The notes under the pieces are model-generated. The model was not told where the DNA came from and did not search any database. It saw only the letters and a program-made list of their open reading frames with translations. Positions 6,001 through 64,000 of a stretch of 64,000 nt of DNA are shown here, piece by piece. The stretch lies in assembly GCA_965649765.1 (NCBI GenBank), contig OZ287750.1:87854001-87918000 (forward strand), written 5' to 3'. Position 1 is the first letter of the stretch. Each line of letters begins with the position of its first letter. Source of the stretch: Bispira polyomma. Its lineage: Eukaryota. The translations under genes and the position numbers were made by a program.

Positions 6001-9000
6001 TAGGGAATTGGTCTGGTGATGAGAAGGGGGTTGGTCTGGTGATGAGAAGGGAGTTAGTCTGGTGATGAGAAAATAGGTTCCAATAAGCTCGCACAGTAAT
6101 CAAATTTCTTTAATGGATTTTTTAACAGTTTCTGGTATGTCTCCCTCTATTCTTCACTCTACTATTTAAGTTTGTACATTTCAAATGAACAAGCTATAAC
6201 TAGATATCAAGTTTACCTTACACAGCATCAATTAATACTGATGTTAAATTTCCTGTACACATTATTCAAAGAAATTATGTTTTAGTCCATGTATTTTGGT
6301 AAGTTAGTCTGTGTTTTTTTGTCACCATAATTACACAAAATTACTAAAATGATTTACACTAAATTTGGTGGATCGATGCACAATGGAACAACACATTGCA
6401 GATAGGTGTATCCACAGATTATCATTTTCACTTTTTGTTTAAAGTACTGTGCTGCTTATTGGAGGTATGCAATCTAGGGAATGTAGTCAGCAGTGTATCA
6501 AGGTTGTAGCTCCTTATTTCTTTTAATGTGCTTTTAATTTCAGAACAAGCAAAGCCTTTGAGAAAGGCTATTACTTCCTTCTACACGACTTGTACAAAGA
6601 TGCCAAAAGAACGGCCAACTTTTCCCAGTACCAAAACGTCAGTAAAATGCCGCTAACCGACATCTATGGGGGCATAGGGCACACAATAGAGGAGCTTGTT
6701 ATAAGGTGACACGTAATATAGTAAAGACCCTACAATGTGCCACAATTAGTTTTATTTAGTTATTTATTTAAGTTCTTACACATAGTACACTATTTTAAGA
6801 AGAAAGCACAGAAATAGAGAATTGAAATAAATAAGATGAAATACAAGAATACAAATGAAAGGGTTAAATAAGAAATGGGTACAAGTTATAGAACTCCCTA
6901 GAGTACTTCATTACTGGATCAATATTAAGTACATGTACTTCTAAAATAATCAATTGAACACATTATTTCTTCCTTGGTATATTTTATCTTATCAATATGA
7001 TTTAAACTGTCTCTATCTCTGTTTCTTATCAGTTGTAATACAACAGGTATAGAAACCTCAACATGCCTAGAAGAATGAATACTAAGCTTATTTCTAACCA
7101 AGTTCATAGTTCTACAAATAGAGGAATTACTACCATGCAAATCTAGTGATGCACAGACATTTATAATAGTATTGTGACAAGAAATGATACTTTTAAAACA
7201 CTTTAACTATCTTTCAATCAGCTGATCTTCCATACATAAATAACAACTCTGTGCAGGTATGCACCATGTGGCCTCCGACCTAAATTATTTCATTGTCTCA
7301 TGCACTTCGTCCAAGTTACATACAATTAAACCAACATACTTGGCAAATCATCAGGGTCAACGGAGCTAAGTCATCTCCCTTTGATCTCCCATTCAGTGTC
7401 CCTTTCTGCTCCCTCACTCCGAAAAATTATTCCAAGGTCCTGGAACAGTTTTCTAGCTGCTTGTCTTCAATCGAATCTTGGATGAATAATTCAAAATTGA
7501 AACCCAACCTTGACAAAACAGAATTCCTTCTTATTGGCTCCAAACATCAGAGGGAAAAAGTTCTTGACTTCTTTTCTACCATGGTTATAGCACTGTTCCT
7601 GCTGACAGTGCGAAGAACCTTGGAGTTACTTTTGACATTTACTTCTCCTTTAAAAACATGTCTCGAATGTCTGTCGTTCCTGCTACTGCAACATCCGTAA
7701 CTTTTGCAGGTTTTGCCGGCATTTAATCCAAAAAAATAACATTGCAGTGGCAAATGCCCTGGTATCAAGTTGATTAGATTACTATAACTCACTGCTATAT
7801 GGAATTGGACAGGGCCAAATAAACAAGCTACTGAAAATTCAAAATAACCTGTGCAGAATAGGAAGCCATTTTAGCCCTCACACTCACACAACTCCCCTGC
7901 TTAAACAATTATATTGGCTACCTATTGAGTTCTGTATTAAATTTAAGGTAATTGTCCTCATTTTTAAGACAGTCCATGTACATCAACCTGCCTACTTATC
8001 ACCTATGCTGTCTCTCAGCAATCTCACTAGAGGCAATCGTCTCTCTACTTCTGGTGTCCTACCCAAAAAATCAGCTGGATCAAAATCATTCTTAGTTGCA
8101 GCACCTGCTGGATGGAATAACCTCCTTACCAGTCTTCGGACTGAGACAAGGATCACAGGTTTCAGAAAAAAGCTCAAAACACATCTATATCAGCTCGCTG
8201 TCACACCCTAGCATTAATCTGATGGTCACAACTGAATCTCTGATCACAAATCTTTTTCCATCTACAGGACTATGCTTTTCCACACTTACTAGGATATGCG
8301 CCACAGAGGACGCCTGGTCATCGATTGTGGTGCTACAGAAGTAAAAACATCAACATTTACATTCACCATAATGACAACTCCTTCCATTGTACACCGATAG
8401 TCTATCATAGCACTGACCTATTAAACCACACACCATAATGACAACTTCTTCCTTTGTACACCGATAGTCTATCATAGCACTGATCTATTAAACCACACAC
8501 CATAATGACAACTTCTTCCTTTGTACACCGATAGTCTATCACAACACTGACATAATAAACCACACACAATAACGACAACTTCTTCCTTTGTACACCGAAA
8601 GTCTATCACAGCACTGACCTATTAAACCACACACCACAATGACAACTTCTTCCTTTGTACACCGATAGTCTATCACAACACTGACATAATAAACCACACA
8701 CAATAACGACAACTTCTTCCTTTGTACACCGAAAGTCTATCACAGCACTGACCTATTAAACCACACACCATAATGACAACTACTTCTTTTGTACACCGAT
8801 AGTCTATCATAGCACTGACCTATTAAACCACACACCATAATGACAACTACTTTCCTTTGTGCACCGATAGTCTATCATAGCACTGACCTATTAAACCACA
8901 CACCATAATGACAACTTCTTCCTTTGTACACCGATAGTCTATCATAGCACTGATCTATTAAACCACACACCATAATGACAACTTCTTCCTTTGTACACCG

Positions 9001-12000
9001 ATAGTCTATCACAACACTGACATAATAAACCACACACAATAACGACAACTTCTTCCTTTGTACACCGAAAGTCTATCACAGCACTGACCTATTAAACCAC
9101 ACACCACAATGACAACTTCTTCCTTTGTACACCGATAGTCTATCACAACACTGACATAATAAACCACACACAATAACGACAACTTCTTCCTTTGTACACC
9201 GAAAGTCTATCACAGCACTGACCTATTAAACCACACACCATAATGACAACTACTTCTTTTGTACACCGATAGTCTATCATAGCACTGACCTATTAAACCA
9301 CACACCATAATGACAACTACTTTCCTTTGTGCACCGATAGTCTATCATAGCACTGACCTATTAAACCACACACCATAATGACAACTACTTCTTTTGTACA
9401 CCGATAGTCTATCATAGCACTGACCTATTAAACCACACACCATAATGACAACTACTTTCCTTTGTGCACCGATAGTCTGTCATAGCACTGACCTAGTAAA
9501 GCACACCATAACGACAACTCCTCCTGTTATACACATATAGTCTATCATAGCACCGACCCCATGGGCATAAAAATTGATAAAGTGGTTATCTCTTATATCA
9601 CATTGGCCAATTAGATTACCAGCCTTTTAATACAAGACTTTAACATTCATAATTCAAAAAATAGACCCACACCAAGGAAAGGATCTTTTGAACCATCTCT
9701 GTTTGTTTCTCTATTACAATAAGTCCCTCAATGTTAAGTCCTATTTTTGTCTAAATTCTCTTTAGGATGCACAGGTATTAAACACAAGTTAGACTGATGG
9801 TTTTTTTTGTCTTATAGGTTGACATTTTTATTGTAGGTAACCTTTATTTTTAAAGTGTTTTCCTACCAGAGCCCTAATTTTGGTGTTATATTACATCAGG
9901 CTAAAAAAACATAACACAATACAAATATATGACAAAGATATGCAAGCTCACTATTTATATACTATTATGTATAGTAATTAACCTTATATTTTTTTTTTAT
10001 ATTATTATATTTCTCATATTCACCTAATATTAATCTTAAATTTCTCAGTATTTTCAACTTTAAAGTTTTATATTATTGTATTTCCACACTTCTACAGCTG
10101 TGAGTGGGAGGGCAATCCGTGTAACCATGGCGACTTTGTGCAGCAGTTGACTGATTACGGTCAGTGTTACACCTTCAACAGTGGACACAATGGAACACAG
10201 CTTAAGATGGCCTCAACTACAGGTTAATAAGCACAACATACAACCAGCCATTAATAGCATGAGTCACATTTGAGCTGATAGGCCTATACATTGACAGTGA
10301 TCGTAAGCTACCAGTTGATACGGTGTTAACATTTATAGAAGGAGGGGGCACTTACTTTGACTAAGTCAGAGTGCTCAGCCCTCAGTACTGTATGCCGTTA
10401 CACATTTCAATGATTTGCTATAGTAATGTTGACAGAGTTTTTTACTGATGAGGGACAGAGCGGTTACCCTAAACAAAAGCTTACAAATGTGAAATGTCAG
10501 GGGTTTACTATGTTCTATGCACAGAAGAAATATGGAAATATTTTTAAATAATGTTATTTATGTAAATAAGTCCTTATAGCTTGGCCATAAGTTATAACGT
10601 TGTATACATTATAGATTAATTAACACAAACTAAATGGAAAGATAATCCTTTTTGTGCCATACATTTTGCTTATAGTAACGGTTAAGGCTCTGTCGATGGT
10701 GGCTAAAAAGCCACGAAACAGAGGCAGAAAACATACTATAAATGTTACTTGTTAAATGCGTTGTAACAAATAAATTTTAAGAGCTGTGAGTTACATATTT
10801 GTATGAACATTTTATTGTGTCACAGAAATAAAATCTCTATCTATAATGGTTGCAGGTTCTGGTGGTGGGCTGAGATTGCAGCTAAATATAGAACAATATG
10901 AATACATGCGTGGACCAAGTGAGGGGGCGGGGCTTAAGATATTGATCCACAACTATAATGAAATTCCATTGGTTAAAGACCATGGGGTGGCTGTCCCACC
11001 AGGTTCACATGCCTTCATGTCTGTGAAGACAACTGAGGTAAGCATTATGCGACTAAGAACTGATAGGTATTCAAATAAAAGATTTAATCGTTCATTTTCA
11101 AAGCCTTCAATTTTGTTGTATATACTGAACACATTCCCTTATGCAGAAGGATAAAGTAATAGCTTTCACATGTTTGTATTATATTATGATTGCCAGTGGT
11201 CTAGTGGTTGGGGTGTTGATTCTATTCCTGGCATTGAATAATCATCCTCAAGCTAGCGTCGGTGCCCATAGTGGTCTATCTATTGATATTGATGATTTAT
11301 ATCTATGATATATGTGTTTCCTCTGTAACATCCACGAAGAAGGTTGGATCTGAAAAAATTGTCTCCCTGTTGAACTTAGATCACTAGAAAACACATCATG
11401 ATTTAGGAGAATCCTTAACATCTGTCTCTTCAAACTTGCTTCCACACCTTAGTTCCCTCCCTATACGCCTCCACATTATTCCCTATGACCTGGCAGGGGA
11501 GTAGCTAGGATTTTTCATTTGGTACTCCCCAATTTATCCAAAGAGGTTTTGTTTTTGTGCTAACATAAATTTAATTCCTGGTTTTTATTATGTTTTTGTT
11601 GTTTTTTTTTCTGTCATTAAATGGGTACGCCTGGGTGTACTGGTTTCTACACAAGCTACGCCCCCGCCTGGCTTTGTTTTTGGGACTCAGTTGGTTAATT
11701 GATTATTTTGTTGTACCTTGCAATATTGAGGTGCATTCAAAATGCAAAATACAATACAATACATTGTAATAACTATAAGACATACACCAACACATTAAGA
11801 CACAAAATGTTCAACAATTACAGGGGTTGAAAGTGAAAAGGTTATGAAAATTTAATTCCATAGATTTCATTTTGCTTCTACATAATATCATAGCTAAGAG
11901 TACTTTATTTCATCTGCCAATGGATAAAAAAAAAAAAAAAGTTTTAAAAAACATTTCTAGATCCGCCATCCAACCTGGATCTACTGCAAAATCTATACTG

Positions 12001-34616: not shown

Positions 34617-36053
34617 TTACACCTCGTCAAAGGTGAAGTGGAAGTGCTGTTTCCTGCCTTTTTCGAACCTCATGAACTGGACATGGTCTATGTCAGTTTC
34701 GTCTGAGAGCATGGTCCTCCAGGTTCCCCTCAGGTAATCATTACTGTGCACCGTATTGGCTGGAATAAACAACGTGTGCATTTTAGGTATGATGAACCCT
34801 GTCAGATGTAGGGTATCGTCGTTCACGTACTTCCCCAGCACCATCACCCCCGAATCCTCCTCTAGCGGGCAGTCAAGATGGTCGAAACCGTGCTTTTCTA
34901 TGCCAGAGCCGCCATTCCCCGCCAGGACGTATTCCTCCAGGTACTTCTGAGAGTAATCAAAGTCAATGACGCCATGTCTGTACACAAGGCAGCAATCCTG
35001 CTCCGACCGATCTGCGAAGCAGCAGTTGTAGTAGGACAGATTCTGGCTGGTCGCCATAATCGCCGGCACCACGCCATCAAAGGCCCCGGTAAATGTCAGC
35101 TCGCCAGATTTCTCGCCAATTTCTTTTCTCCTCCAGTTGGTCCCACTCACAGCCACGATATGCTTTGGTAGCACCACTGCTGGCTGAAAAAAGGAGAGCT
35201 CGGACAGCTTGTAGGACCCGGGTAAGTAGTCTTTCACTAAATCACTACCTGACATGACCAAATTATCATGTTGGTCATACCTCTTCAGACCCGCAAATTT
35301 CTTCCAACGTTCCTCCAGGAAAGCTGTGATTTTATTTGTGTCGGCTGAGTGGCAGATCTTTCTTAGGCCATCCTTAAGCAAGAGCTGGGCTCTCTTCTCT
35401 TTCTCTGATACCATTAGGGTTTGGTTAATGTCCAGCATTATGAAGATATCCCGGAACTGTTCATACTCTAGGCAGCCATTGCCATCCGTGTCACATTCTT
35501 GGAACATTGTGATCCCAGGAGCAATAAGATCTGCCTGGCCAATCGATATCAGAAAAACCACAAATTCCTTGAAATCAAGAATACCACGGCTTTCTTTGTC
35601 TGCTTTTCGAAATGCCTTTACAATATGCATGTCATCTTCCCCATCATTCTTTGCACGAGAAACGTTCCATCCAACCACCATCATCATGTAGCGGAAGAAT
35701 TCCTCGAAAGCCACAAAGCCACTGCCATCCATGTCAATGATTCCAAAGATTAAATCCAATTGTTCATCATCAATGTCTATCTCAAGCACAGTGATCATGG
35801 TGTGGAATTCGTCTTTATCCATCAATCCATTGCCATCTTTATCAATCCCAAGGAAGACAGTGCGGACCTTTTCGGCAATCTCTTCTTTATTCAGACTTGG
35901 ACCTTGATCTTTTCTATTCTGTTTGTTTGTCTCTGGATCCCTGCTCTTTTTACCAATATCTGGATTACTTAGTCTTCCCTGGATTTCCTGAATCATAGGC
36001 TTTGTTCCAGATAACATAGCCCTGGCATTTCTTCTAAAATCTTTCTGCCATTC
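34617..36053 (-). CDS. Fusion gene last exon: end of PH helix, 4 EF-hands, AllA-like cupin
   Basis: 1437-nt open exon after ttccag acceptor. EF loops DKDGNGLMDKDE, DMDGSGFVAFEE, DKESRGILDFKE, DTDGNGCLEYEQ. Cupin motifs IEKHGFDH and LTGFIIPKMHTLFIPANTVHS. Confidence 0.93.
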   Translation of the reverse strand, partial: EWQKDFRRNARAMLSGTKPMIQEIQGRLSNPDIGKKSRDPETNKQNRKDQGPSLNKEEIAEKVRTVFLGIDKDGNGLMDKDEFHTMITVLEIDIDDEQLDLIFGIIDMDGSGFVAFEEFFRYMMMVVGWNVSRAKNDGEDDMHIVKAFRKADKESRGILDFKEFVVFLISIGQADLIAPGITMFQECDTDGNGCLEYEQFRDIFIMLDINQTLMVSEKEKRAQLLLKDGLRKICHSADTNKITAFLEERWKKFAGLKRYDQHDNLVMSGSDLVKDYLPGSYKLSELSFFQPAVVLPKHIVAVSGTNWRRKEIGEKSGELTFTGAFDGVVPAIMATSQNLSYYNCCFADRSEQDCCLVYRHGVIDFDYSQKYLEEYVLAGNGGSGIEKHGFDHLDCPLEEDSGVMVLGKYVNDDTLHLTGFIIPKMHTLFIPANTVHSNDYLRGTWRTMLSDETDIDHVQFMRFEKGRKQHFHFTFDEV

Positions 36054-39000
36054 CTGGAATATAACAAAAATAATTTTATGCAAATTCCTGTAAAACTGGT
36101 ATGTATAGAGCATTTTAGTAGAACACTAGGGACCCGTGGTGTATTGTTGTATCCCACCCCTGCAATCAAGGGTTCAAATCGAATATATGTGGGATAGTTG
36201 GTAGTAGACTTGCTGAAACCAGTGGTTGGCAGTGCACCAAATCCTGACCGATTACCCTGCTCTGATTTCTTGCACATGTCTGCTATCATATGATACAACA
36301 TTCGATGAAGGCGACTTAAAGTCCAAACTAAACTAAATCAATAGAAAACACCACAATAGTCTCTCTATACAGGTTTAGAATTAAACATATTTCCCTAAGT
36401 TGTAGTAAGGTTTACTGTAAAATAGGTAGTTACATGTCAGAGTTACCTTATGCTATTATATACAAAAGTATGGTACATAGCTTCAATTGTATCCAAATGA
36501 ATAGGCTAGTAAGATATGTTTTGGATAACAGCAACTTAGTTTAAAAGAGAACAAAACCAATGAACCTGTAATCCAAATAATGGAAGAACTTCTGTTATCT
36601 TCTATTTACACCTTTGTAAAGTAAGTTTAGTCAGGATAATAGAAGGTTCATTAAATAGAATTTATTTATTAATTAATTGTGGCGTTGTACAGGAAAGAAA
36701 CTGAGGGGGTAAGTGAGTTTGAAAAGATAGGTTTTTTCTTAACCCAGAAAGTGTTTCTGGTGATCTAAGCCCAACTGGGAGACTATTTTATAGGGGGAGC
36801 AGTATATTTCAACTCTTGAGGACAACAGCTTTAAAAGTCGTGACAAGGATTTTAAACTAAATTCTATAATGAATGAGAAATCTAATGTAATTGGTACGCA
36901 TAGCCAGACAAAATATGACTGTACACAGATGAGTTTTAAATGAACTGTAAGTTTTTTATCCCGAATAGAACGGAACAAACTCTTACTCTCCCCCTCAAAA
37001 AATAGATGCTCTATTGTAATAGATCTGTCAAATGCATTATCTAACCTCAACTTCATACTCTGTCTCCAGTGCCAATTGGATGATCACATTGGTGGCCTCA
37101 TCCACTACGAACAACTCTATTCGGTTGTTGAGTTTCTTGGATGCACTAAACACCTTCCAGCCAGGGGTTACTTTGGTGCAGATGGACTTGCCGTTGATGT
37201 AGAAGACTTTGTCAGGCTTCTCAGATTTTCTGTCGGCGTATAACTCCAGCTTGCCATAACACATGACCACCTTGAATTTCTTCCACACAGACCACTCTGT
37301 GTCGCGCTTCTCTCTGCAAGGAATGTTCTCAATCTGTAAAAACGAGAAGTGGCAACTAGAAAAAACACATTGCCCTCTACAAGGAGATTTTAATAACTTC
37401 TCTTACTGCCTCTCCACTCCATACCGTCATAGTGTAAACCCACAATAGGGATTGTGGCAACCCAGTCATTGGGAGCGTTTCACTTCAGAATTACTGGCCT
37501 TTACCCAATGCAGGTTTGAATCCTCCTTTTGGGGGAAGTTGGTTAGGTATTGGCCACAGAGTGGTGGTTTACAATGCTTTATACAGAATAGATACAGCTT
37601 ATTTGTAAATAGGAAATGATTGCTTGGGTATGAAAATGGAAGTTTTGCCACTAAAATCCAGTCTCTAAGTATAGTATTAGCAGAGTTATGGCCAAAAATA
37701 GGTTAGACTGGTGGCCATCTTGTATTTTCCTGATTACAAATATTTTCCCTGAAGGTGACAAAGTAGCATTAAGTGGAATGAGATAAGTAGGGTCTATTCA
37801 ATCATTGTCAGTCATAAAACATTGTATGTATTCACGCCTAAAATAGCATCTGCCAGGCTATCAGCACTGGTTACCTCCACCATTAAATCTAACTGCAACT
37901 AGATGACCTATTGTTACCAGTCTTGGAAGTGTAGATTTTACAGGCTATCTGTGGAACCAGTCATTAAGCATAATGACCAAAATTCCCGGTCATTTTGCGT
38001 AATGACCAAAATTTGTTTGTCAATTTTTATACAGATTGCCTGATCAATATTATGAGATTTTAGTAAATCTGTGTAATGGTGTTGGTAATAGTTTTCTGTG
38101 ATAAGATATCGAGGAAGTAAAGTAAATATGGTAAGCCTCTATCTGTAACTTTGGGTGCTTTTTTTCAGCAGATTGACTTAAATTCTATTAAGCATTGTTT
38201 AAATTCATAATTATGTCACATATTATAGGTGTCTCAGGTAGGAATTTATTTAAGTGTGAGGTTCATCTTATGTGGGGTTTCATATTGTGTAAATGACAAG
38301 ATAAAATTTGGAAATATATCATTTTTCCTCTAAATGGGAATCGGTTTACATGTAACTTCTTTGATTTTTAAAATGGTCCATTAAGCCAATTTCTTTGATG
38401 TTTTGTGTTGTTATTTTAAAGCAAAAGAAAACGAAAGTAGTTGAAGAATACTTTGAAGTTAATTTTGTCCACTGGTATTGCTTTAAGTGAAATTCAGCAT
38501 ATACCTTCTTGTGTGATTGACTTATTTGTGTTGCTACCTGGATACGGATTTAGTTAAATAATTCACACAAAGGTCCTCCTAATCAAAGTTAATACACATG
38601 AAGCAACTTTAATGCTGAACAATAAAGGTTCATCTTTGTGCAATTTCTTTGGTGTGAAAGCCTGATTAGGAATTTCAGGTCAATCCTGAGTACCATTATG
38701 AAATAAAACTGTACTGGAAATAAAAAAATGTGAATTCAACAAGTGCAAGTGCTTTAAAAACAAAATTGAATGCTACAGCCATTGTCACAACAGCCTCTCG
38801 TGTAAAAGTAAATGAGGAGTACATCTGGAAAGAAAAGGGACAAAAATGGAATTAACCACAGTTATCTTTAGTCTTAGCTGTAGTCTTATATGTTTTATTT
38901 TACATGTTTTATGCTTTATTTGAGGGCTGTAAAAGAGTACTTAAGTATTCATTATAGAATAGAGTGACGAACTATTCAGAGTACAAAAAAACTCATGCAA

Positions 39001-42000
39001 GTCCTGGCTATTTTTACACTAAAAAGAGTACTCATGTACAAAACTTACTGCTCTGTATGGCTCTACTTTATTTTAGGTCTATGTAAATAATACCAGTGTA
39101 TAATACACAACAGCTTCTATTTCTTAATTTTGTTTCATTTCTTATTACACATAATGATACAATATGTCAAGGAAAAGGTAAACACCTACTACCAAGAAGA
39201 AGAAGTTTTATTAATATTTAAATTTACATAAATATTGCATTTGAAAAATATATGATCATGATATATAATATTATTGTCTGCTCTATGTAGTTTCAGTCAT
39301 TACATGTAATGACTGATGGTTTCAGGCATTACGCGAAATGACTGAAAGTTTTAGTCACTATGCGTAATGACTGGTTTCACAGATTGACTGTAAGATAGAA
39401 ACACTTAGACTTCACCTTTGTGCTACTACACCAGGGTATATAATTGAGCTTTTTTAAGAATTGTTATCAATATACGGCCCAAGGTGCTCAGTGTTCATAA
39501 GCGGGCTCTCTCTGGTTTTTTTCTCTGGTTACAAAAATATTCTCTCTCTAGTTTTGCAACCCTAATGTGATATTCTTTTTTTGTTAACATAAACAAAAAA
39601 ACTTAACTATGTGACCCTATGAATACACTTAACCCAGTTACATTAAAATACTCATGAACTGTTTTCTTTATGCAGTGTTGTGTGCAATACAAGACTTCAA
39701 CTACATTTATATAGAGGTTACATTTTTCCACTTGAATTAATTCACAAGTTTTTAACCAAAAAACATTAACTTGTTTATGACCTGGTTACAAGATGTTCCT
39801 GTCTGTCCAGCCTTTTAAGTTTATGTGCAGGTTTGACAAACAAGCAAATACGTGGTACACAGTTTCACAAGAATTTTTGGGTCCACTTCATGTCAGAATT
39901 TTTGTTGTCCCGAAATTAATGTATTCACTCTGCCAATGTGTTACTGTGCCCACAAAGGAAGAAACAATCCTAGATCTGCCCTTGTATCCATAACTACTCT
40001 ATAATATAATGGGAGTGTTTCTTGATCCCATACTCCAGTCCCTCCATCTGATTTGATATGAACCTAACAAAGCAACCAGTGGAACAAAGCAATTACATTA
40101 CCTCCTTGGTGGAGGGATATTAAAGTAACCAGCACACTAGCTCTTGTATAATCCCTAGTGTATAAACTCTAATGAACACACCCAAATAATTTGAAGCAAT
40201 AGAGAATTTTTTCTAAATTAGAATTTACTTGGATTTTTATGTCGCATTCAATAGTTTATATTATATCATGGCGGCCACATTTAATGATGGAAGAAACCAC
40301 CAGTTTATGGCAAATACCTGACAAACTTTCCCACATGAAGGAACGACCAGGATTCAAACCCAAACTGGTAAGAAACCAGTGATTGTGAAGCCTCCAAGTC
40401 AAAACAATGGAGGGATTATGTTATTAAAATATGTCTTTTAAGTATATCATTTGGCCTTTTCTATTCTAACATATTTTTCTTGATTTCCATTTAGTAACAG
40501 AATATATTATGAAAAGTATCTGTAGGAACTACAATGATTATTCCCAGAATTCCAAGGATTAATTTTTATTTTGCCTACAAAAACAATGCTAACATGAGGA
40601 GGGCAGAGGTAATTAATTATATTGGATGTGCATCTAAAGTTAGGTACTTTACTGTAAGCCAATTTGATACTGACCTTGATTGGTTCTTGGACAATCCAGG
40701 AAAACATGCACTGAATGAACTCTTGATCACCTGACTTCCTAATCAAGTTCAGGAATTCTTTGAAGGTCCACTCATTCTCTGTGTCATAATTGTTGTTCCT
40801 ATAGAAATAAATAAATATACATGTATATATTATATATATTATCTGGGTATCCATACCAATGTTTCTCCGTACCACAAAGAATTACATTGGCTTCCCATTC
40901 ATCATCAAATTTCTTTTAAGATCAATGTCACTACTTTCAAATCTAGTTGTCTAGCTCTCCTACCCTGCTACGCATCTTTCCTTCACTAATCTTAAGAGTG
41001 GAAATTGTCTTTCTGTTTCCTGTGTTAAACCCACCGAGAGGGCTTGATCTTCAGCTTTCTCAATCGCTGACCCTATGTTATAGAATAGTATTCCTGTTAA
41101 ACTTAGATCACTAGAAACACTTTGCGATTTAGTAGAAAACTAAAAACCTATCTCTTCAAACTCCCTTAGTTTCATCCCTATACACCCACACTTCCCTCCT
41201 TACGACCTGGCAATATTTTTGGGACTTCACTATTGGTTAATCGATTTTGTTGTTGCGCTCAATAAGATGCCTTACAAATGCAAAATACAATGTACATATG
41301 TATCACAAAAAGCGTTACACCCTTCTAGTCGCTTACAAATATAAAGGATTCTTCTTTTGGCTCATGCCCCATTCCTCTACCAATATAATGTATAATGGCT
41401 TGGTAGTTTGTTTGTAATCCTGGTGATAAAAAAAAAAAAAAACAATGGGCCAATGACAAAAGCACAACCCCTGTGGTAGAGGTAAACAGTAGCAGTAAGT
41501 GGGACACAAACAGTGGACTTAGGCATTCGGGCATTGAAAGATTCCCGACTTCAAGCACTCACATTTTAGTGTACACCCTTATATTTGAAATCTATATCAG
41601 AGATTTTAAAAGAGAAATGAAATCATCACTAATTTAAAACGTTAATTTAACTGGAAATAAATACTTTCTCCCACAATTTTTAAAAGGTTTGAACATCTAG
41701 CAGTTGTATATTGATGAAAAGCCCAAAATATTTCATTGTTTGTTAACACCAACACAACTTTTTAACTCAAGATACATATTACGAATCACCTCTTTAAAAA
41801 ATGTAACATCATATTCTATAAACATCTTTGAAGAGCAACAATATATTGGATACCCCACAAAAAATCTAGAAGAATTATAGTAGGAAGCAACCAGTTTGTC
41901 ATTATATTATAGTTACTCGGGATTACTGCCAAATTCAGACAGCGCATCTCCATCTGATCCACAGAGTGTGCAATAATAAATATTATACAAGTATGTCTTA

Positions 42001-45000
42001 AATGTCAATGTCACCAAGCATTTTCAGTGATTTCAAAATTTCTGATTTTTGAGTTTACTGCCCTGAGCATAACTAGTCAGTCACAGAAATTAGGTTTAAC
42101 AAAAACCATATTGTTACCAGCAAGCATTTTAATTACTAGGTGGCGTCTCCAGTAGAATTACTGAACTCACCCCTCTTTCTTCACTTTTAAACCCACAGTC
42201 AAAGGGGTAACACGTTGTTAGAAAAATTAGAAGGAAAAGCTCAATGATATACACCGAGCATACGACGCCATATTGGAATTTTAACTTTCAAAATTTTATA
42301 AGTTGTTATTTTAGTTCATGTGAAGAATAGCAGGATTGTTTTTATGTGTAACTTGTTTTAAAATACATTTTAAATCATATGGTGCTATTAATTGTGTACT
42401 GGATGGGGAAACAAAAGAAAAAAGTGATGGTTGAATGCAACTGCTGCAAGATAATGCATGAACGCCCAGTAGGTAATAGGTGTACTCAACCAGTAATACT
42501 ACACAGCGAAGAGGAAGAAAGTAAATTTGGTCATAAACATCAAGAGCAGGGACATCAGACAGATATTGAATCTTCCGTACTAGATAATGATAGCGTTTAT
42601 AACCAATTGTGCAAATGACAGCAGTCCATGATGGACACGCTTTTGAAATCTGTAACAAAGTTACAACAAGATGTGGACGGAATAAAGTCACAGAACCAGA
42701 ATGAGCCCGTTCTTCAGAAGGCCCCCGTTTTCACTATACCAGACATAACTCTACCTGTGTTAGTTCCGACAACATATCCAGTAGTGGCAGAAGCTAGGCC
42801 CATTCCAGCTCCTCGTTCACGGAACGTTAGCACAGTACCAAACGTGACCACCATGCAACCTCACGCGTCATTACCCACGTATCCAGGGCTGGACTCTACC
42901 ACACAACTGCAGATTCCATCCTCGCACACTTGGTTGTCAACTCAGAACGACATTGTACCGATTACTGATGTTTTAAAACACTCAGCCATGATACAGAATG
43001 AAGATTGCAACAGTACGAAACCAGAGCAGCTGAACAATTACTTCAGGGTAAGTCCCTTTTAAAGCGAAAATCCGGTAGACATAATATCTCCGAAACAGGC
43101 ACAGCAGATCCGTTATTCCGTTGGCTGAATGAGGGCTGCCGGAGTAACCAAGAAGCGAGTACCATATGATGATTTAAGTATTGCACAGTTGGCCAGTGGC
43201 CAAATACAGAACATTCTTGATGTAAAAAATGCAGCCATTTCCCATGCTATGTTAAAACAGTTAGGCGATACACTCTGAGACGCAGCCAACATTTCTTGGC
43301 CAGTCGCACGCAGCACCTGTGCAACGAATATGCACGACGTCGAAAAGGGCAGGTTTACATGGCTCGATGATACGAGATAGACGATCAACTGCCTATCTTA
43401 TTCACAGGCTCTACTAGTTTCAGGTGCTACGTACAGCACACCCAGTTTGGGATCACAGCCAGGTTCGGGAATGAAAACACGAGTCCCATGTCAACATTTC
43501 AACCGAGGATAGTGCAACAACCTGGGAGATCACGCAAATCCAACTACCATGTTTTGACACATATGTGCTAACTGTTACAGGACCACTCGACGTGAACATA
43601 CACACCCAGAGAGCAAGTGCTTCAAGCTACACGGGAAAACATCTACATCAGCAGTAGGGAAGGGACAGAACGTACCCCAGTAGAACAGAAGACGACTGAC
43701 GGGCACTAGTATAAGTAATTTTATTAACAGTGTAGAAGTGCAAAATAGTAGATATAAAACCAGTAGGTATAGGCAAGTAACTGAACCAATTATTGTGATA
43801 ATACTAAATTTGTAATTAGGACAGACAATATGAGTAATCAAGAGAGGGGTAATGATACTCATTCAAAATGAAATTTTAGACAAAATGATAAATTTTATGT
43901 GAATCACAATATCAATCATAGAACATTGACTGATAACTGTTTCAACAGCATAAGTAAAACACACAGTTTGTCACAAAGTGCTCGTTTGCAAAGGGACAAT
44001 AGTGATTTTGGCAATATATATAATAAATGTTGGCAAAAATCTTCTGATGTAAATCACATGTGTCAACATAATCATGAGGTTCAGAGTAAAATTGGAAATC
44101 ATAACGTTTCAGAAACTGATTATAATGTACCCAATAGCAGAAATCATAATGGACTAGAAATTGAAATTGATTTGAAAAATAATCAAAATGTCCTCACTAG
44201 TATTGAGAATCATAATGTTTTTGAAACTTGTAATATTTCCAGTGAGAACCAGGAATTGAACAAGCATGTTGTGACTCAAATGACTTATTTTAAATTTATC
44301 ATACCCAAACGGAAATTCGGTTGACGACCATACGGATAGAGATACATATGATCATTTGGATTTCATTTCAAAATTGCCCATCATTGATCAAATTGTAAAA
44401 GAAATTAAGTCGATTGGTAAAACAGTAAGATTAGCAAAGGTGGACGTAGCGAACGTGTTTCGAAATTTAACAGTAGACCCCCATGATGTTATGAAGCTAG
44501 GATATAATTGGAAAAACAGTCATTATATTGACTTAACTTTAGCGTTTGGACTCAAACACGGGAATTCTATCTTTATGCCTGTATCTGATACAGTAGTATA
44601 TATCTTTAAAAAAGGGTTTTAAGGTATTTAACTACATCGACGACTTTTTAATATGCAAAAGCAAGGATAAAGCCACTGCAGCTTATGAACTACTGCAGGA
44701 CGTACTGCAAGACTTAGGTTTACCCATAAACAAAAAGAAGTTAGTACCTCTCAGGACTCGAGTCACTTGCATGGGGATAACCATCGATATAAATGAAAGT
44801 ACATGAAAGTATTGACGAGGAAAATTTAAAATCTACTGAGCATCCATTAGGTATGGCACAAAAAGATACAATATAGTAGAAACTGATCTATATGATCCTA
44901 GAATAGCCATGTATCAAAAATCCATCACTATCAATTCAACTTTCAGGCCAAAACCAATAGGTATTTTTGATATTTTACAAATTTAAAACATTTCAAGACA

Positions 45001-47066
45001 ATGCCAACTTCAATCTTTTCCAGAATTGTACAGAACAGCTTTCCTTTTTGCATTTTATGTTTTTTTTTTGAGAATTTCCAACTTAACTTCAGCAAACTTT
45101 TGACCCAACACGACACCTGACAAGGTCAGATGTCTTATTTGCACATCCTGGCACACATTTTATTATAAAATGGTCAAAGACAAATCAAAACAGACAAGAA
45201 CACAACATTATTCAGTTACCAACCAACAAAATCTATTGGTTATGTCCAGTCAGGGCAGCGAAGGCATTATTTGAACAATATCCAACTTTGCCTCATGCCC
45301 GCTTACTAGCTGATCCTCATCAGAAAGGAATATCTTTGACAGAAACTACCTTGAGGCTTACTTTGAAAAAATACTGATTCAAAATGGAATTCCCCTAGCC
45401 TCTAACAGTAATATTAAGCTACAAAACATCCAAAAATATAGATGCTGGAAGTCAGATGCTGTTTGGTCATATTTAGAGTCTACTTCTCATGCAGCCTCAA
45501 TTATTCCAGAAACTTTCACTGCAATCATTCCCTCTTCCTTTTAAATTTGGGTTTGGTATTTTAAAATTTTTAAAATATGTGATATTTTTAAAATTTTGTA
45601 CAGGTGTACAAATTTAAATTAAATAAAATTTTTCCAAACAGCATCTATCTTTCCTATAACACATTAAACTTTAAACATCACCTTCTTGGGGTCAAATATA
45701 AACCCAGGTCCAGTGTGTTTTAAAGGCAATGTGTTATTCACTGTGCATTTTGGCAACATACCCACACACCCATACAATAACACATAGACACACACAATCC
45801 TAACTCGAGAATCACTGACCTACTCACTGATGTAACTTTCAGCATTGTTCCATCCAGTAACCACCTGATACATACACACCCACACAAGCCTTACATTAGA
45901 ATCACTCACCTGCTCACTGATGTATCTTTCTGCATTGTCCCATCCAGTAACCACTTGACGTTCTCTCCAGACATCACTGGTGGATATGATCCAGCATGAG
46001 CTAGTCTTATAAAGAGGCTCCAGATCTGATCAAACTGCTGGCCAGAACTCAAACCTTTGTAACCGGCTCCAGAGAGAGCCAAATTCAGACAGCGCCTCTC
46101 CATCTGATCCTCAAACTGGGTCTGGTACACTGCTGGGTGTTTGAGGTACAGAAGAGCATATTTCTTGAAGTCTGTGAACTGAACCTGTGATGATTTAGAA
46201 AGTAAAGCATTGAAGGCCTAGTTGAAACAAGAGTTGTCTTTTTAAAAAGACATACTAAATGAACAGTATGAAATACACTAACATTGATATGGCCACTAGA
46301 TACTCAGGCAGGCTGCGTCCGATAACAATAAATCTGACACCACCCACTCAGTTTGGACATGTTGATTGCTTCCAACCAATGCATGAAGGTCTGACATATT
46401 TTCTAATATGACGGTGCCCTTTTTAAAATGATTAAAAACGTATTACATATACAGTAGAACCTATTTTCCGACTATATTGGTAGAGTGAGAATTTGTTTGG
46501 ATAATAGAAGGTCTGTTAAATAGAAGTGGCATTTTAGTATAAAGCAATAGCAAAAAATAAGTTTGGGAGAATGAAATTAAGTCCGTAAAATCGGATAGTC
46601 GGATAATAGAGGGTCGGATAATAGAGGTTCCATTATATTAACAAACTGTATGCTTTACATAGACCTACCTGTTGCAATGCCTGGGAAAATAAATGAAAAC
46701 CACCTGTTGCCATGCCTTGGGCTTAATTATTGTTTATTTATGTCTATTAATATTATAGATAACAATATAGAACTATTGACAAACGTTTAAGATATATATA
46801 TAAGGTCTAAAAGCTTGCTTGTTGGTATCACACTATACCACTGCATCTTGTCACCAACAAAACTACAAATAAGCAAAAATTGTTTCAGAGATAATTACCC
46901 TGGCATTCGGAAAGGCATCATCGAATTGTTCTTGCGAATACGTCACGAGTCCTTCAGTATGGCATTGCTGTAGGATTTTCTTTAGTGTATCTTTATGGAG
47001 GTTTGCTCCTCTCCCCTTGATACTCCAGCCGGCCTCCCACACACACATTAACACTTCCCCAGCCAT
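34617..47066 (-). CDS. SWAP70/DEF6-like N-terminus + PH + 4xEF-hand + ureidoglycolate-lyase-like cupin fusion protein, whole spliced gene, ~763 aa
   Basis: Exons on -: 47066-46899, 46184-45910, 40798-40675, 37333-37046, 36053-34617 (2292 nt, intron phases 0,2,0,0, no internal stops). The PH domain's C-terminal helix (ETEYEVE|EWQKDF) spans the last intron, which ties the last exon to the upstream ones. Confidence 0.85.
37046..37333 (-). CDS. Fusion gene coding exon 4 (PH domain)
   Basis: IENIPCREKRDTEWSVWKKFKVVMCYGKLELYADRKSEKPDKVFYING...IIQLALETEYEVE; PH strand pattern (WKK..V, L.LY.D, I.L.L). Confidence 0.87.
37941..39390. mobile_element. Non-autonomous TA-target (Tc1/mariner-like) DNA transposon, 1.45 kb
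   Basis: TA|caggctatctgtggaaccagtcattaagcataatgac ... gtcactatgcgtaatgactggtttcacagattgactg|TA, with palindromic subterminal repeats and no transposase ORF. Confidence 0.75.
40675..40798 (-). CDS. Fusion gene coding exon 3
   Basis: Phase 2-0; NNNYDTENEWTFKEFLNLIRKSGDQEFIQCMFSWIVQEPIK. Confidence 0.85.
42380..45540 (+). mobile_element. Degenerate DIRS/Ngaro-type tyrosine-recombinase retrotransposon (gag, RT, YR remnants)
   Basis: Gag-like CNCCKIMHERPVGNRC, VPYDDLSIAQL and PCQHFNRG.C...HICANC. RT motifs LAKVDVANVFRNL, LAFGLK and NYIDDFL (YIDD at 44633-44644). YR motifs FLFAFY..LRISNL, IKWSKTNQ, LCPV and WKSDAVWSYL. Many stops, frameshifts and deletions; element ends not defined. Confidence 0.85.
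45910..46184 (-). CDS. Fusion gene coding exon 2
   Basis: VQFTDFKKY...QMERRCLNL...FDQIWSLFIRLAHAGSYPPVMSGENVKWLL, resembling SWAP70 [28 protein letters not shown] (recalled); donor gtgagt. Confidence 0.87.
46452..46633. mobile_element. Tc1/mariner(pogo)-like MITE
   Basis: TA|cagtagaacctattttccgacta ... gtcggataatagaggttccatta|TA imperfect TIRs. Confidence 0.6.
46899..47066 (-). CDS. Fusion gene coding exon 1 (SWAP70-like N-terminus)
   Basis: Acceptor ttgcag at 47095-47100, ATG at 47066; MAGEVLMCVWEAGWSIKGRGANLHKDTLKKIL..., resembling SWAP70 ELLKAIWHAF...VSKSQLKVL (recalled); donor gtaatt. Confidence 0.8.
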
Positions 47067-48103
47067 TGTCACCAGTTAGTTGTAGATTGCACTACTGCAA
47101 AACAAACAAAAATAAACAATAATAAAGAAGCACACAAAATCATCATCATTATCATTGAAGTATTTATATTGTGCTTTGTTGGTATTTTATCCTCTAAGGT
47201 GATCATTCTCCTGAAAGGGATATAGTCCTATGACAAAGCCAAGGCCTGTATTTACTAACGAACTTAGCTAAGTCTTTGGCTTAAGTCTAGCACAAAAGTA
47301 TGCTGATTCAAGCCTAAGACTTGGCTAAGTCCCTTCGTGAATACAGGTCATGGGTCATCATCATACCTTAGGCAATGTCTTAGAAATGTCTATTAAGCTA
47401 AATCCCTATTATGTACATGTTTAAAAATTGTTATATCTGATAAGAATGTACACACATTAAAATGTTGGGTTTTTTAAAAAATATTTTAAAGGGACTAATA
47501 AACGCCTTGTGGGATAGGTGATACGACAATTATATATAGATACTTGTTTATTATAATGACAAATTGTTATTATGTAGAAAACATGTCACTATAATAACCA
47601 AATAAATTAAAAAATATCAATGTATCTATGTGTCACTAAAACAAATAAAGATAAATGAATGATTATATACTACTTCCAGATATGAGACTTAATATTCTCT
47701 GCCAAATGTTCTGTTTGGATTCTTCTGTATTCAATCTGCTGTAACATTCACATATATTTATTCTACTTATATGTAGAGAGAGATTATATTTAAACTTAGT
47801 TAACACAGTCAGGAACATATTGATTCTATTTAGATACAATATGATTTATTAGTATTGACAAATGTAAAACAATGGATTGTTTTTGTTTGCTTTATTGTTA
47901 AAAGGCCTAGAAAAAAGGGAGATCTTGTTAAACTTACTTAATATTTCATTTGTTTGGTTATAGTGACATGTATTACACTATTACAATAAGTTTTAAAAAT
48001 ATATCAGAAAAATAACTATATTGGGCTTATATGTCTCATATATAGTGGTGTGTAATTAGCCCCAAAAAAGGAGATTTAAATAGGCAAAAAAGAAAATACA
48101 TAC

Positions 48104-62163: not shown

Positions 62164-63600
62164 TCACACCTCGTCAAAGGTGAAGTGAAAATGCTGTTTC
62201 CTACCTTTTTCGAACCTCATGAACTGGACATGGTCTATGTCAGTTTCGTCTGATAGCATGGTCCTCCAGGTTCCCCTCAGGTAGTCATTACTGTGCACCG
62301 TATTGGCTGGAATGAACACCGTGTGCATCTTGGGTATGATGAACCCTGACAAGTGTAGAGTATTGTCGTTAACATACTTCCCCAGCACCATCACCCCCGA
62401 ATCCTCCTCTAGCGGGCAGTCAAGATGGTCAAAACTGTGTTTTTCTATGCCTGAGCCGCCCATACCAGCCAGGACATATTCTTCTAGGTACTTTTGAGAG
62501 TAATCAAAGTCAATGACGCCGTGTCTGTACACAAGGCTGTAATCCTGCTCCGACTGATTCGCGAAGCAGCAGTTGTAGTAGGACAGATTCTGGCTGGTCG
62601 CCATAATCGCTGGCACCACACCATCAAAGGCCCCAGTGAAGGTCAACTCGCCAGATTTCTCACCGCTTCGTTTACTCCTCCAGTTGGTCCCATTCACAGC
62701 CACGATATGCTTTGGTAGCACCACTGGTGGCTGAAAGAAGGAGAGCTCCGACAGCTTGTAGGACCCGGGTAAGTAGTCTTTCACCAAATCACTACCTGAC
62801 ATGACCAAATTGTCATGTTGGTCATACCTCTTCAAACCCGCAAATTTCTTCCAACGTTCCTCCAGGAAAGCTGTGATTTTACTTGTGTCGGCCGAGTGGC
62901 AGATCTTCCTTAGGCCATTCTTCAGCAAGAGCTGTGCTCTCTTCTCTTTCTCTGATACCATTACGGTTTGGTTAATGTCTAGCATTATGAAGATATCGCG
63001 GAACTGTTCATACTCCAAGAAGCCGTTGCCATCCGTGTCACATTCTTGGAACATTGTAATCCCCGGAGCAATAAGATCTGCCTGGCCAATCGATATCAGA
63101 AAAACCACAAATTCCTTGAAATCAAGAATACCGCGGCTTTCATTGTCGGCTTTTCGAAATGCCTTCACAATATGCATGTCATCTTCCTCATCATTTTTTG
63201 CACGAGAAACGTTCCATCCAACCACCATCATCATGTAGCGGAAGAACTCCTCGAAAGCCACAAAACCACTGCCATCCATGTCAATGACTCCAAAGATTAA
63301 ATCCAACTGTTCATCATCAATGTCTATCTCGAGCACGTTGATCATGGTGTGGAATTCGTCTTTATCCATCAATCCATTGCCATCTTTATCAATCCCCAGG
63401 AAGACAGTGCGGACCTTTTCGGCAATCTCTTCTTTATTCAGACTTGGACCTTGATCTTTCTTATTCTGATTGTTTGTCTCCGAATCCCTGTTCTTTTTAC
63501 CAATATCGGGATTACTTGGTCTTCTCTGGATTTCCTGAATCATGGGCTTTGTTCCAGATACCATAGCCCTGGCATTTCTTCGAAAATCCTTCTGCCATTC
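62164..63600 (-). CDS. Last exon of a tandem paralog of the PH/EF-hand/cupin gene (upstream exons lie beyond the window)
   Basis: Same length (1437 nt) and same acceptor position as 34617-36053. Open frame with about 29 aa differences in 466. The flanking intron (to 64000) and 3' region (from ~60930) are also homologous. Confidence 0.92.
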   Translation of the reverse strand, partial: EWQKDFRRNARAMVSGTKPMIQEIQRRPSNPDIGKKNRDSETNNQNKKDQGPSLNKEEIAEKVRTVFLGIDKDGNGLMDKDEFHTMINVLEIDIDDEQLDLIFGVIDMDGSGFVAFEEFFRYMMMVVGWNVSRAKNDEEDDMHIVKAFRKADNESRGILDFKEFVVFLISIGQADLIAPGITMFQECDTDGNGFLEYEQFRDIFIMLDINQTVMVSEKEKRAQLLLKNGLRKICHSADTSKITAFLEERWKKFAGLKRYDQHDNLVMSGSDLVKDYLPGSYKLSELSFFQPPVVLPKHIVAVNGTNWRSKRSGEKSGELTFTGAFDGVVPAIMATSQNLSYYNCCFANQSEQDYSLVYRHGVIDFDYSQKYLEEYVLAGMGGSGIEKHSFDHLDCPLEEDSGVMVLGKYVNDNTLHLSGFIIPKMHTVFIPANTVHSNDYLRGTWRTMLSDETDIDHVQFMRFEKGRKQHFHFTFDEV

Positions 63601-64000
63601 CTGACAAAAAAAAAAAAATTTTTAAAATGCCTGTTAAACTAGTATGTATAGATTATCTAACGAGAACACTAGAGCCTTGTGGACTTGCCTACCACCTCTG
63701 CATTCAAGGGTTTGAATCAAATATATGTGGGAAAGTTAGTAATAGACTTGCTGAAAACCAGTGGTTTGAAGAGCTCCAAATCCTAACTGATTACCCTGCT
63801 CTGATTTCTTGCACCTGTTCACTGTCATATGACACAACGTTTGATGTAGGTGACTTTAAGCCCAAACTAAACTAAATCTAAGGAAAGCACCACATAAGTC
63901 TCTCCCCACAGGATTGTAATTAAACATATTTTACTGAGTTATAGCAAGGTTTACTGTAAAATAGGTAGTTACATGTCAGAGTTACCTCATGCTATTATAT

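Follow-up and report, generated by a model that had tools for sequence, protein, structure and literature searches.

A Bispira polyomma gene joining a SWAP70-like front half, EF-hands and a putative metal-binding cupin

The window, a 64,000-nucleotide stretch of the Bispira polyomma genome, raises the question of whether the front half of a SWAP70-like protein, a set of EF-hands and a possible metalloenzyme belong to one protein, and what such a protein might do. A sequence-only reading had joined an N-terminus, a PH domain, EF-hands and a C-terminal region in one spliced frame, which we resolve into five coding exons:

47066-46899, minus strand: coding exon 1 (168 nt, 56 aa), first part of the N-terminal SWAP70-like region (a degenerate EF-hand)
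46184-45910, minus strand: coding exon 2 (275 nt), SWAP70-like helical region
40798-40675, minus strand: coding exon 3 (124 nt), helix leading into the PH domain
37333-37046, minus strand: coding exon 4 (288 nt), divergent PH domain
36053-34617, minus strand: coding exon 5 (1437 nt, 478 aa plus stop), intronless, with a 55-aa linker, four EF-hands, a helical connector and the cupin

The coding total is 2292 nt (763 aa plus stop), with GT..AG at all introns, junction phases of 0, 2, 0 and 0, and no internal in-frame stop in any of the five exons. A polypyrimidine-AG acceptor at 47095 points to a further, non-coding exon upstream. The gene model is known from DNA, with splicing predicted, and was searched one exon at a time; the B. 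polyomma read sets X1-X3 are genomic, not RNA, and contain no splice joints. The gene has a tandem paralogue:

62164..63600, minus strand: exon 5 of the paralogue, 93% nucleotide identity to exon 5 of the window gene
C3:87918603-87924582, outside the window: exons 1-4 of the paralogue

All five exon lengths are identical in this copy, with AG/GT ends retained, and contig L049, from another species, carries all five exons in conserved order at 45-73% identity. Because both keep all five exons, the joined gene is not a product of chance. Between the tandem copies, dN/dS in exon 5 is 0.11 for the cupin and 0.06 for the EF-hands, and the gene is shown computationally, from sequence comparison, to be under purifying selection. 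It is very improbable that the joining of the exons is an annotation artefact, with exon 5 transcribed alone: some relatives do carry the EF-hands and cupin without a PH domain, and for B. polyomma the model rests on genomic sequence, but the paralogue and one other species share its exon lengths, phases and splice sites, and the whole architecture lies on a 3.3-kb contig as an uninterrupted 810-aa ORF and on 12 further transcript-sized contigs. The gene is real, and the earlier observation is confirmed.

The idea that this was a one-off chimera or an altered SWAP70 orthologue did not survive. The architecture is common to about 50 relatives of ~800 aa each (chiton, bivalves, Lingula), 13 of them on transcript-sized contigs, and represents an old multigene family; ordinary SWAP70-like genes with a charged tail coexist in the same genome, separately, on C8. 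The EF-hands stay with the cupin while the N-terminal partner varies (SAM, C2, LysM/U-box or none), and the pair is a mobile module. A carbonic-anhydrase fusion (P0088) was set aside as a probable gene-model merge. As the sequence-only reading had supposed, no description of the family or its architecture was found in the literature searched, nor any cupin metalloenzyme with a built-in calmodulin-like switch. Database entries for the family in mussels, oysters and clams are named 'switch-associated protein 70' or 'calmodulin', which is misleading.

The SWAP70-like character of the N-terminus is borne out by structure, with residues 1-195 of a Lingula relative matching the SWAP70 cluster at TM 0.80 over 191 aa. 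A Pfam search of the window's own exons found no direct match to PF25530, the N-terminal EF-hand-like region, so the link to SWAP70 runs via the relatives: PF25530 is at the cut-off in P0002 and reaches E<0.01 in three of the 43 relatives, and window exons 1 and 2 score E 3.5e-5 and 6e-12 against the family profile. Exon 2 reads QIWSLFIRL..YPP where the family motif is KLWxIxNRL..YPP. No strongly hydrophobic N-terminal or membrane segment is present. That the PH domain is of the SWAP70 type also held, the best PDB match of the family profile being the SWAP70/KIAA0640 PH domain (2dn6, E 1.4e-14). A PH domain was matched in 42/43 relatives; the window exon alone matches Pfam PH weakly (E 0.039) and gives a gap-free alignment with the PH beta1-beta2 segment of the family. 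The suggested recruitment to phosphoinositides is weakened for this copy. Two basic PH residues, a beta1 Lys (36/43) and a beta2 Arg (37/43), are frequent in the family, and the family's G and K (beta1) and R and W (beta2) are E, C, F and K here, so that the basic PIP3-binding residues of the beta1-beta2 loop are lost in this copy, as they are in its orthologue. Lipid binding is imperfectly predictable from sequence motifs (PMC4704004). The EF-hands begin about 55 aa past the PH domain and the cupin follows, leaving no coiled-coil or actin-binding tail.

Pfam EF-hand_1 matches four stretches of exon 5 (E 8e-19), with loops as follows:

35808..35843, minus strand: EF-hand loop 1, canonical here and in 74/77 relatives
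35700..35735, minus strand: EF-hand loop 2, canonical here and in 54/76 relatives
35565..35600, minus strand: EF-hand loop 3, degenerate in this copy, with E at position 3 and R at 5; 55/72 relatives have it canonical
35457..35492, minus strand: EF-hand loop 4, weakened by Gln at position 12, canonical in only 10/60 relatives

The proposed calmodulin-like module of four EF-hands agrees with the fold and with Pfam, but in the window copy canonical loops are confined to the first two hands. The degenerate EF3 and EF4 of this copy count against the reading as a Ca2+-regulated metalloenzyme. A predicted model of the EF-hands with the cupin (pTM 0.68) is weakly compatible with packing of the two.

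The C-terminal region, for which an AllA-like cupin fold had been proposed, does model as a cupin (pLDDT 88), with structures of ureidoglycolate lyase AllA as its best matches (Z 10.5-10.9) and DUF4867 (SqvB/SftX; 9GYY) next (Z 8.6-9.2). The barrel aligns with AllA over 130 aa at an rmsd of 3.2-3.3 A, Foldseek places the model against AllA at E 7e-4 (prob 1.0), and nearly all of the highest-ranking VIA matches can be recognised as cupin/double-stranded beta-helix proteins. The region comprises:

35076..35417, minus strand: two helices and a conserved beta extension before the barrel, without counterpart in AllA
34620..35075, minus strand: cupin barrel, superposing on the whole AllA chain
34878..34898, minus strand: cupin motif 1, putative metal ligands E671, H673 and H677, by conservation and SqvB-like spacing
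34746..34748, minus strand: cupin motif 2, putative fourth ligand H721, equivalent by spacing to SqvB H150 and AllA H124

Cupin sequence searches of Pfam, NCBIfam and PDB found no match, those to Sm proteins and antibodies being noise, and a BFVD fold search found no clear one. The two His-bearing motifs on a modelled double-stranded beta-helix point to the metal-binding cupin superfamily. The conserved E/H/H/H set noted earlier, as putative ligands, is retained in 192/209 homologues, those of bacteria and probable giant viruses included, and is lost in a few family members (P0116, P0169, P0183). The quoted E-K-H-x2-D-H and its downstream motif are indeed present, but the Asp is not conserved, the family motif being E-x-H-x-F-x-H. 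Polar residues around the ligands (D182, N226, D227, W233 and T235, cupin numbering) are very highly conserved. The ligand spacing follows E97/H99/E103 of SqvB, a DUF4867 protein in which these residues and H150 form the Fe site (PMC11968277), and by this spacing the four putative ligands would converge on one metal.

The AllA motifs quoted in the sequence-only reading agree with E. coli AllA. The purine/ureide chemistry suggested there is not supported, and a sequence-level link to AllA/PF04115 is lacking. A Pfam HMM search of the window exons for PF04115, the AllA family, gave no match at E<=1, and comparisons of the family profile with AllA (E 0.39) and with the PF04115 proteins of the same genome, which occupy four separate loci, were not significant. 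The site reads E-x-H-x3-H...H against E-x-H-x4-Q...H in AllA; with no HMM match and a His in place of the AllA Gln, membership in PF04115 was rejected. PF16161 (DUF4867) was likewise not matched by Pfam search.

Lone cupins are sparse in bacteria, where they are about 265 aa long, and occur also in probable giant viruses. Some bacterial homologues precede a class II fructose-bisphosphate aldolase gene near transketolase, others lie near adenosine deaminase, MTA/SAH nucleosidase, FGGY kinase and aldolase II, one is near an Ldh_2/AllD-like dehydrogenase and nucleoside deaminases, and several have ammonium transporter genes nearby. In marine bacteria the lone cupin adjoins one and the same PAS-PAS-GGDEF-EAL gene, though the orientation takes two different forms. 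These gene contexts are few and mutually discordant. A GTDB scan returned only three Geminicoccales genomes, with none among 298 further relatives, and an IMG/VR scan with P0228 gave no match. Horizontal transfer of the whole EF-hand and cupin exon from bacteria is rejected for want of support: the bacterial homologues are rare and without EF-hands, and the tree was a quick run, midpoint-rooted only.

What the cupin does is best approached by weighing several readings. It is quite doubtful that it is a true ureidoglycolate lyase, releasing urea and glyoxylate in a Ca2+-regulated step of purine breakdown: the end-to-end AllA structural match, the single Ldh_2/AllD-like neighbourhood and the ammonium transporters favour it, but similarity to AllA is absent even by profile, AllA Gln79 is a His, there is an additional ~85-aa extension, the genome has its PF04115 loci elsewhere, and the bacterial homologues seen lie outside allantoin clusters. 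Acireductone dioxygenase and quercetinase use three His and one Glu as ligands, and the site here could hold Fe or Mn and use O2 as a dioxygenase, oxidase or O2/redox sensor. Acireductone dioxygenase and 3-HAO are indeed among the structural matches (Z 7.2-7.4), and the PAS-bearing neighbour in marine bacteria fits as well. These matches fall ~3 Z units under AllA, however, and the E-first ligand order is that of AllA/DUF4867, unlike those dioxygenases, leaving this a possible but minor alternative.

A non-catalytic metal or metabolite sensor, in a protein acting as a SWAP70-like adaptor, seems unlikely: repeated fusion to signalling modules (PH, SAM, C2, LysM/U-box), the c-di-GMP enzyme neighbour and the members that lost their ligands are set against stand-alone forms and a very high conservation of ligands and nearby polar residues, both typical of enzymes. 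There is also some chance, a modest one, that the family is a spiralian receptor-coupled signalling enzyme, in which phosphoinositides would recruit the SWAP70 head and a Ca2+-activated cupin would make or destroy a small-molecule messenger. In some marine bacteria this cupin family is tied to the PAS-GGDEF-EAL protein, and probable giant viruses carry it too.

A SWAP70-type N-terminal half, a PH domain, a calmodulin-like EF module and an AllA/DUF4867-type cupin with near-invariant E/H/H/H are shown computationally. As a SWAP70 front half joined to a Ca2+ sensor and a metal-binding barrel, the protein may be a calcium-switched enzyme; we give about even chances to a cytosolic, Ca2+-regulated multidomain metalloenzyme (lyase or isomerase) of an undescribed family, acting on a small polar substrate. 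An intronless EF-hand and cupin cassette would have landed behind the PH exon in a duplicated SWAP70/DEF6 gene, ahead of the divergence of molluscs, brachiopods and Bispira polyomma. A divalent metal in the barrel might serve as a Lewis acid at a hemiacetal or hemiaminal carbon, in lyase, ring-opening or isomerase chemistry like that of AllA and KdgF and that proposed for DUF4867, and Ca2+ at EF1/EF2 could shift the helical connector and so switch activity. The basic PH loop of typical members would dock the enzyme on phosphoinositide membranes; in the fast-evolving sub-lineage of the window copy the PH domain probably binds a protein instead, or binds in a non-canonical way. The substrate is no less likely to be a sugar or sugar phosphate than a ureide, and the cupin fold alone is without power to assign function.

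These results define a cupin family that lacks a Pfam model and has a near-invariant metal site, which animals appear to have wired repeatedly to Ca2+ and to membrane or ubiquitin signalling modules. The SWAP70 front half would act in it as a portable targeting module, and the stand-alone bacterial homologues offer an easy route to the substrate.

Among known systems, CDPK, calpain, NOX5 and SCaMC are enzymes with a built-in calmodulin-like domain, and PLC-delta has the order PH, EF-hands, catalytic domain. The window protein shares the tethered EF-hand module beside a putative catalytic domain with the former and the PH and EF-hand order with the latter, but the catalytic domains are unrelated and this is analogy only. 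To SWAP70/DEF6 it is linked by the N-terminal ~195-aa degenerate-EF helical region, the PH domain, nearest to that of SWAP70, and a phase-0 intron at the PH start within one codon of the site in the genome's SWAP70-like gene. It differs in the missing PH basic signature and in having a cupin and four additional EF-hands in place of the long coiled-coil/DH-like, dimerising, F-actin-binding tail that helps to define SWAP70/DEF6 (PMC11101836). DUF4867, whose role is proposed and not demonstrated, is the closest metal-site analogue (PMC11968277): it shares the spacing E-x-H-x3-[E/H]...H, and language-model neighbours partly carry PF16161, whereas its site is 2His-2Glu rather than 3His-1Glu (His here for the second Glu) and it stands alone, in sulfoglycolysis clusters. 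With AllA/DAL3 (PF04115, EC 4.3.2.3), a Ni-dependent ureidoglycolate lyase (PMC3793230), the protein shares cupin topology across the whole chain, the E-x-H of motif 1, the distal His and a similar N-terminal helix motif, but identity is 8-12%, the third ligand is one residue closer as well as His, the ~85-aa extension is N-terminal, and the cupin is fused to signalling domains.

The minus-strand gene has five coding exons, with GT..AG at every intron, phases 0/2/0/0 and a product of 763 aa; the window contains 0 N bases.

Features of the window
47066-46899, minus strand: coding exon 1
46184-45910, minus strand: coding exon 2
40798-40675, minus strand: coding exon 3
37333-37046, minus strand: coding exon 4
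36053-34617, minus strand: coding exon 5
62164-63600: exon 5 of a tandem paralogue, remaining exons just beyond the window edge
~3700-32600, plus strand: multi-exon DEG/ENaC gene (amiloride-sensitive channel, PF00858), tail-to-tail with the SWAP70-cupin gene
8364-9558: tandem array, ~67-bp unit
5230-6072: looser short-period repeat array
45782-45868 and ~41925-41965: degenerate copies of exon 2 parts in intron 2, one ending donor-like

The sequence-only reading had joined SWAP70-like, PH, EF-hand and C-terminal regions in a single spliced frame, and this frame is borne out. Each exon was searched on its own, and the predicted junctions are backed by three independent lines. The tandem paralogue has five exons of identical lengths, with AG/GT ends and 92-94% nucleotide identity; another species' contig, L049, carries five exons in the same order (45-73% amino acid identity), with splice sites that agree wherever a boundary was checked (the exon 2 donor was not located); and some 50 database proteins, 745-865 aa long, have the PH domain, EF-hands and C-terminal domain together, window exons 1 and 2 matching their residues 1-56 and about 58-140. 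Thirteen of these ~50 derive from 2.5-4.3 kb contigs, and the one such contig checked (3309 nt) holds an uninterrupted 810-aa ORF. Since the paralogue and L049 both keep the five-exon structure, an artefactual joining of the gene model is very improbable. The paralogue is intact (window 62164-64000 and G000:C3:87914000-87924600 of the host genome). Between the tandem copies, exons 2-4 have a dN/dS of 0.20-0.45 and exon 5 has 0.11 (EF region 0.06, cupin 0.11); unlike the other exons, exon 1 shows 10 non-synonymous changes against 1 synonymous, which are small numbers.

The proposed SWAP70-like N-terminus is supported. A profile built on the first ~320 aa of the relatives best matched the SWAP70 (KIAA0640) PH structure (E 1e-14), and the 195 aa outside the PH domain of the Lingula relative gave TM 0.80 over 191 residues against SWAP70 cluster models; PF25530 was matched weakly (3/43 members). 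In the host genome, the profile found two SWAP70-like loci on C8, exon after exon and then a charged helical tail, and the phase-0 intron at the PH start lies at the same position, within one codon, in the family and the host SWAP70-like gene. Given these separate loci and the near-identical intron position, the family is judged a derivative of a SWAP70/DEF6 duplicate rather than an altered SWAP70 orthologue. The C8 loci (G000:C8:41.34 Mb and C8:48.65 Mb) are nearly identical and 7.3 Mb apart, either a recent duplication or a retained haplotype.

Typical members keep the basic PH loop (K 36/43, R 37/43). The window copy aligns gap-free to the family with substitutions G>E, K>C, R>F and W>K, and the L049 PH domain is altered similarly. 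Because basic residues are replaced, canonical phosphoinositide binding by the window copy appears doubtful, and its suggested membrane recruitment is unsupported. Basic-loop motifs are imperfect predictors of PH lipid binding (PMC4704004).

The four predicted EF-hands are present, paired two by two, with calmodulins as top Foldseek matches, but only loops 1 and 2 are canonical in the window copy; E and R stand at positions 3 and 5 of loop 3, and position 12 of loop 4 is Gln. Relatives have canonical loops in 74/77 (loop 1), 54/76 (loop 2), 55/72 (loop 3) and 10/60 (loop 4) cases. Scores of the EF+cupin model (pLDDT 84, pTM 0.68) are compatible with packing of the two parts, short of proof. 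No intron interrupts the EF+cupin exon of the C3 copies, the C4 copies or L049, consistent with a processed or intronless cassette having entered behind the PH exon; in a C7 copy where no PH was detected, the cupin contains an intron. Bacterial transfer of this exon is not required, and bacterial homologues are without EF-hands.

At E<=0.001, the cupin search returned 318 cluster representatives; the named matches, a minority, include no vertebrate, insect or nematode. Named full-length relatives come from the chiton Liolophura, the brachiopod Lingula and the bivalves Mya, Mytilus, Pinctada and Tegillarca; their database labels read 'uncharacterized', 'switch-associated protein 70' or 'calmodulin'. 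Eukaryotic transcriptome proteins P0089-P0100 (the source of GFUD01 is a copepod) have EF+cupin but no SWAP70 head; bdelloid rotifers join EF+cupin to SAM or LysM+U-box, and it is also found with C2. Cupins without EF-hands occur in dinoflagellates, sparsely in bacteria, and on contigs assigned as giant-virus-like from their neighbours (myosin, FNIP, ankyrin, serpin); L023, L024 and L050 are giant-virus-like contigs whose cupins have intact ligands. Proteins P0116, P0169 and P0183 have lost the ligands and are likely pseudo-enzymes; P0169 keeps its PH domain, with no Pfam EF-hand match. Nine cupin loci are spread over C3, C4, C7 and C12 of the host genome. Those on C4 are typical of the family, and a quick tree places the window pair and the L049 gene in a long-branched sub-lineage. 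Divergent copies (G000:C12:12.685, 12.702 and 18.717 Mb; C7:60.737 Mb) had no SWAP70/PH exons that could be found within 10 kb. Locus L043 (G000:C4:10849065-10851110), interrupted in the EF-region frame and with only exon 1 found upstream, is a probable pseudogene. The architecture is real and conserved, and combines known modules with an unclassified cupin family; we found no description of it in the literature searched, and it is apparently undescribed.

The cupin itself has no sequence match in Pfam, NCBIfam or PDB. An AlphaFold2 model from a 93-sequence alignment (pLDDT 88) supports the AllA-like fold first suggested by motif: residues 115-266 superpose on the whole ureidoglycolate lyase chain (2bdr, 1xsq, 1yqc; Z 10.5-10.9, rmsd 3.2-3.3, identity 8-12%), DUF4867 ranks next (Z 8.6-9.2), and sugar ketoisomerases and acireductone dioxygenase come after it at Z about 7. 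An Atlas search agrees. The putative ligands E671, H673, H677 and H721 are intact in 192/209 full-coverage homologues, bacterial and virus-like ones included.

Bacterial gene context offers few clues, and these disagree. The neighbourhood of one marine homologue includes adenosine deaminase, MTA/SAH nucleosidase, FGGY kinase, class II aldolase, Ldh_2 dehydrogenase and a deaminase-like amidohydrolase; a second stands immediately before class II fructose-bisphosphate aldolase, with transketolase nearby. A set of marine bacteria, Geminicoccales among them, keeps the lone cupin next to an orthologous PAS-PAS-GGDEF-EAL gene (46-47% identity), in either of two orientations (L026-L030, L051 and L057), often with an ammonium transporter close by.

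Beyond the demonstrated architecture, fold, conservation and selection of the family, we propose that the cupin very probably binds metal, that EF1/EF2 would, with somewhat better than even likelihood, impose Ca2+ control, and that the chemistry may be that of a Lewis-acid lyase or isomerase acting on a small substrate that resembles a sugar or a ureide, a reading that we hold at about even overall. O2-dependent chemistry or sensing is an unlikely alternative, and a non-catalytic sensor role for the cupin is less likely still. A true ureidoglycolate lyase, which the fold might suggest, has a lower probability again: the host genome already has four separate PF04115 loci (L016-L019, ureidoglycolate-lyase-like; G000 C6:16.14, C7:6.06 and C9:18.22 Mb), so the window gene is not needed for that step. 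Those loci have N-Y/N-H-P-D-G-G-Q in place of the AllA motif E-R-H-P-L-G-T-Q. With these loci, no PF04115 HMM signal and a different third ligand, the ureide function first proposed is left unsupported.

Lewis-acid chemistry at a metal site, our preferred reading, can be set beside two known systems. The Fe site of the DUF4867 cupin SqvB consists of E97, H99, E103 and H150 (PMC11968277), with spacing equal to that of E671/H673/H677/H721. AllA has E72, H74, Q79 and H124 at the equivalent places, where a ligand role is suggested by analogy. The third ligand of the window cupin differs from that of both, it has an extra conserved N-terminal extension, and neither AllA/PF04115 nor DUF4867 gives an HMM signal in it; for these reasons, the cupin, predicted to work like an AllA/DUF4867 cupin, belongs to neither family.
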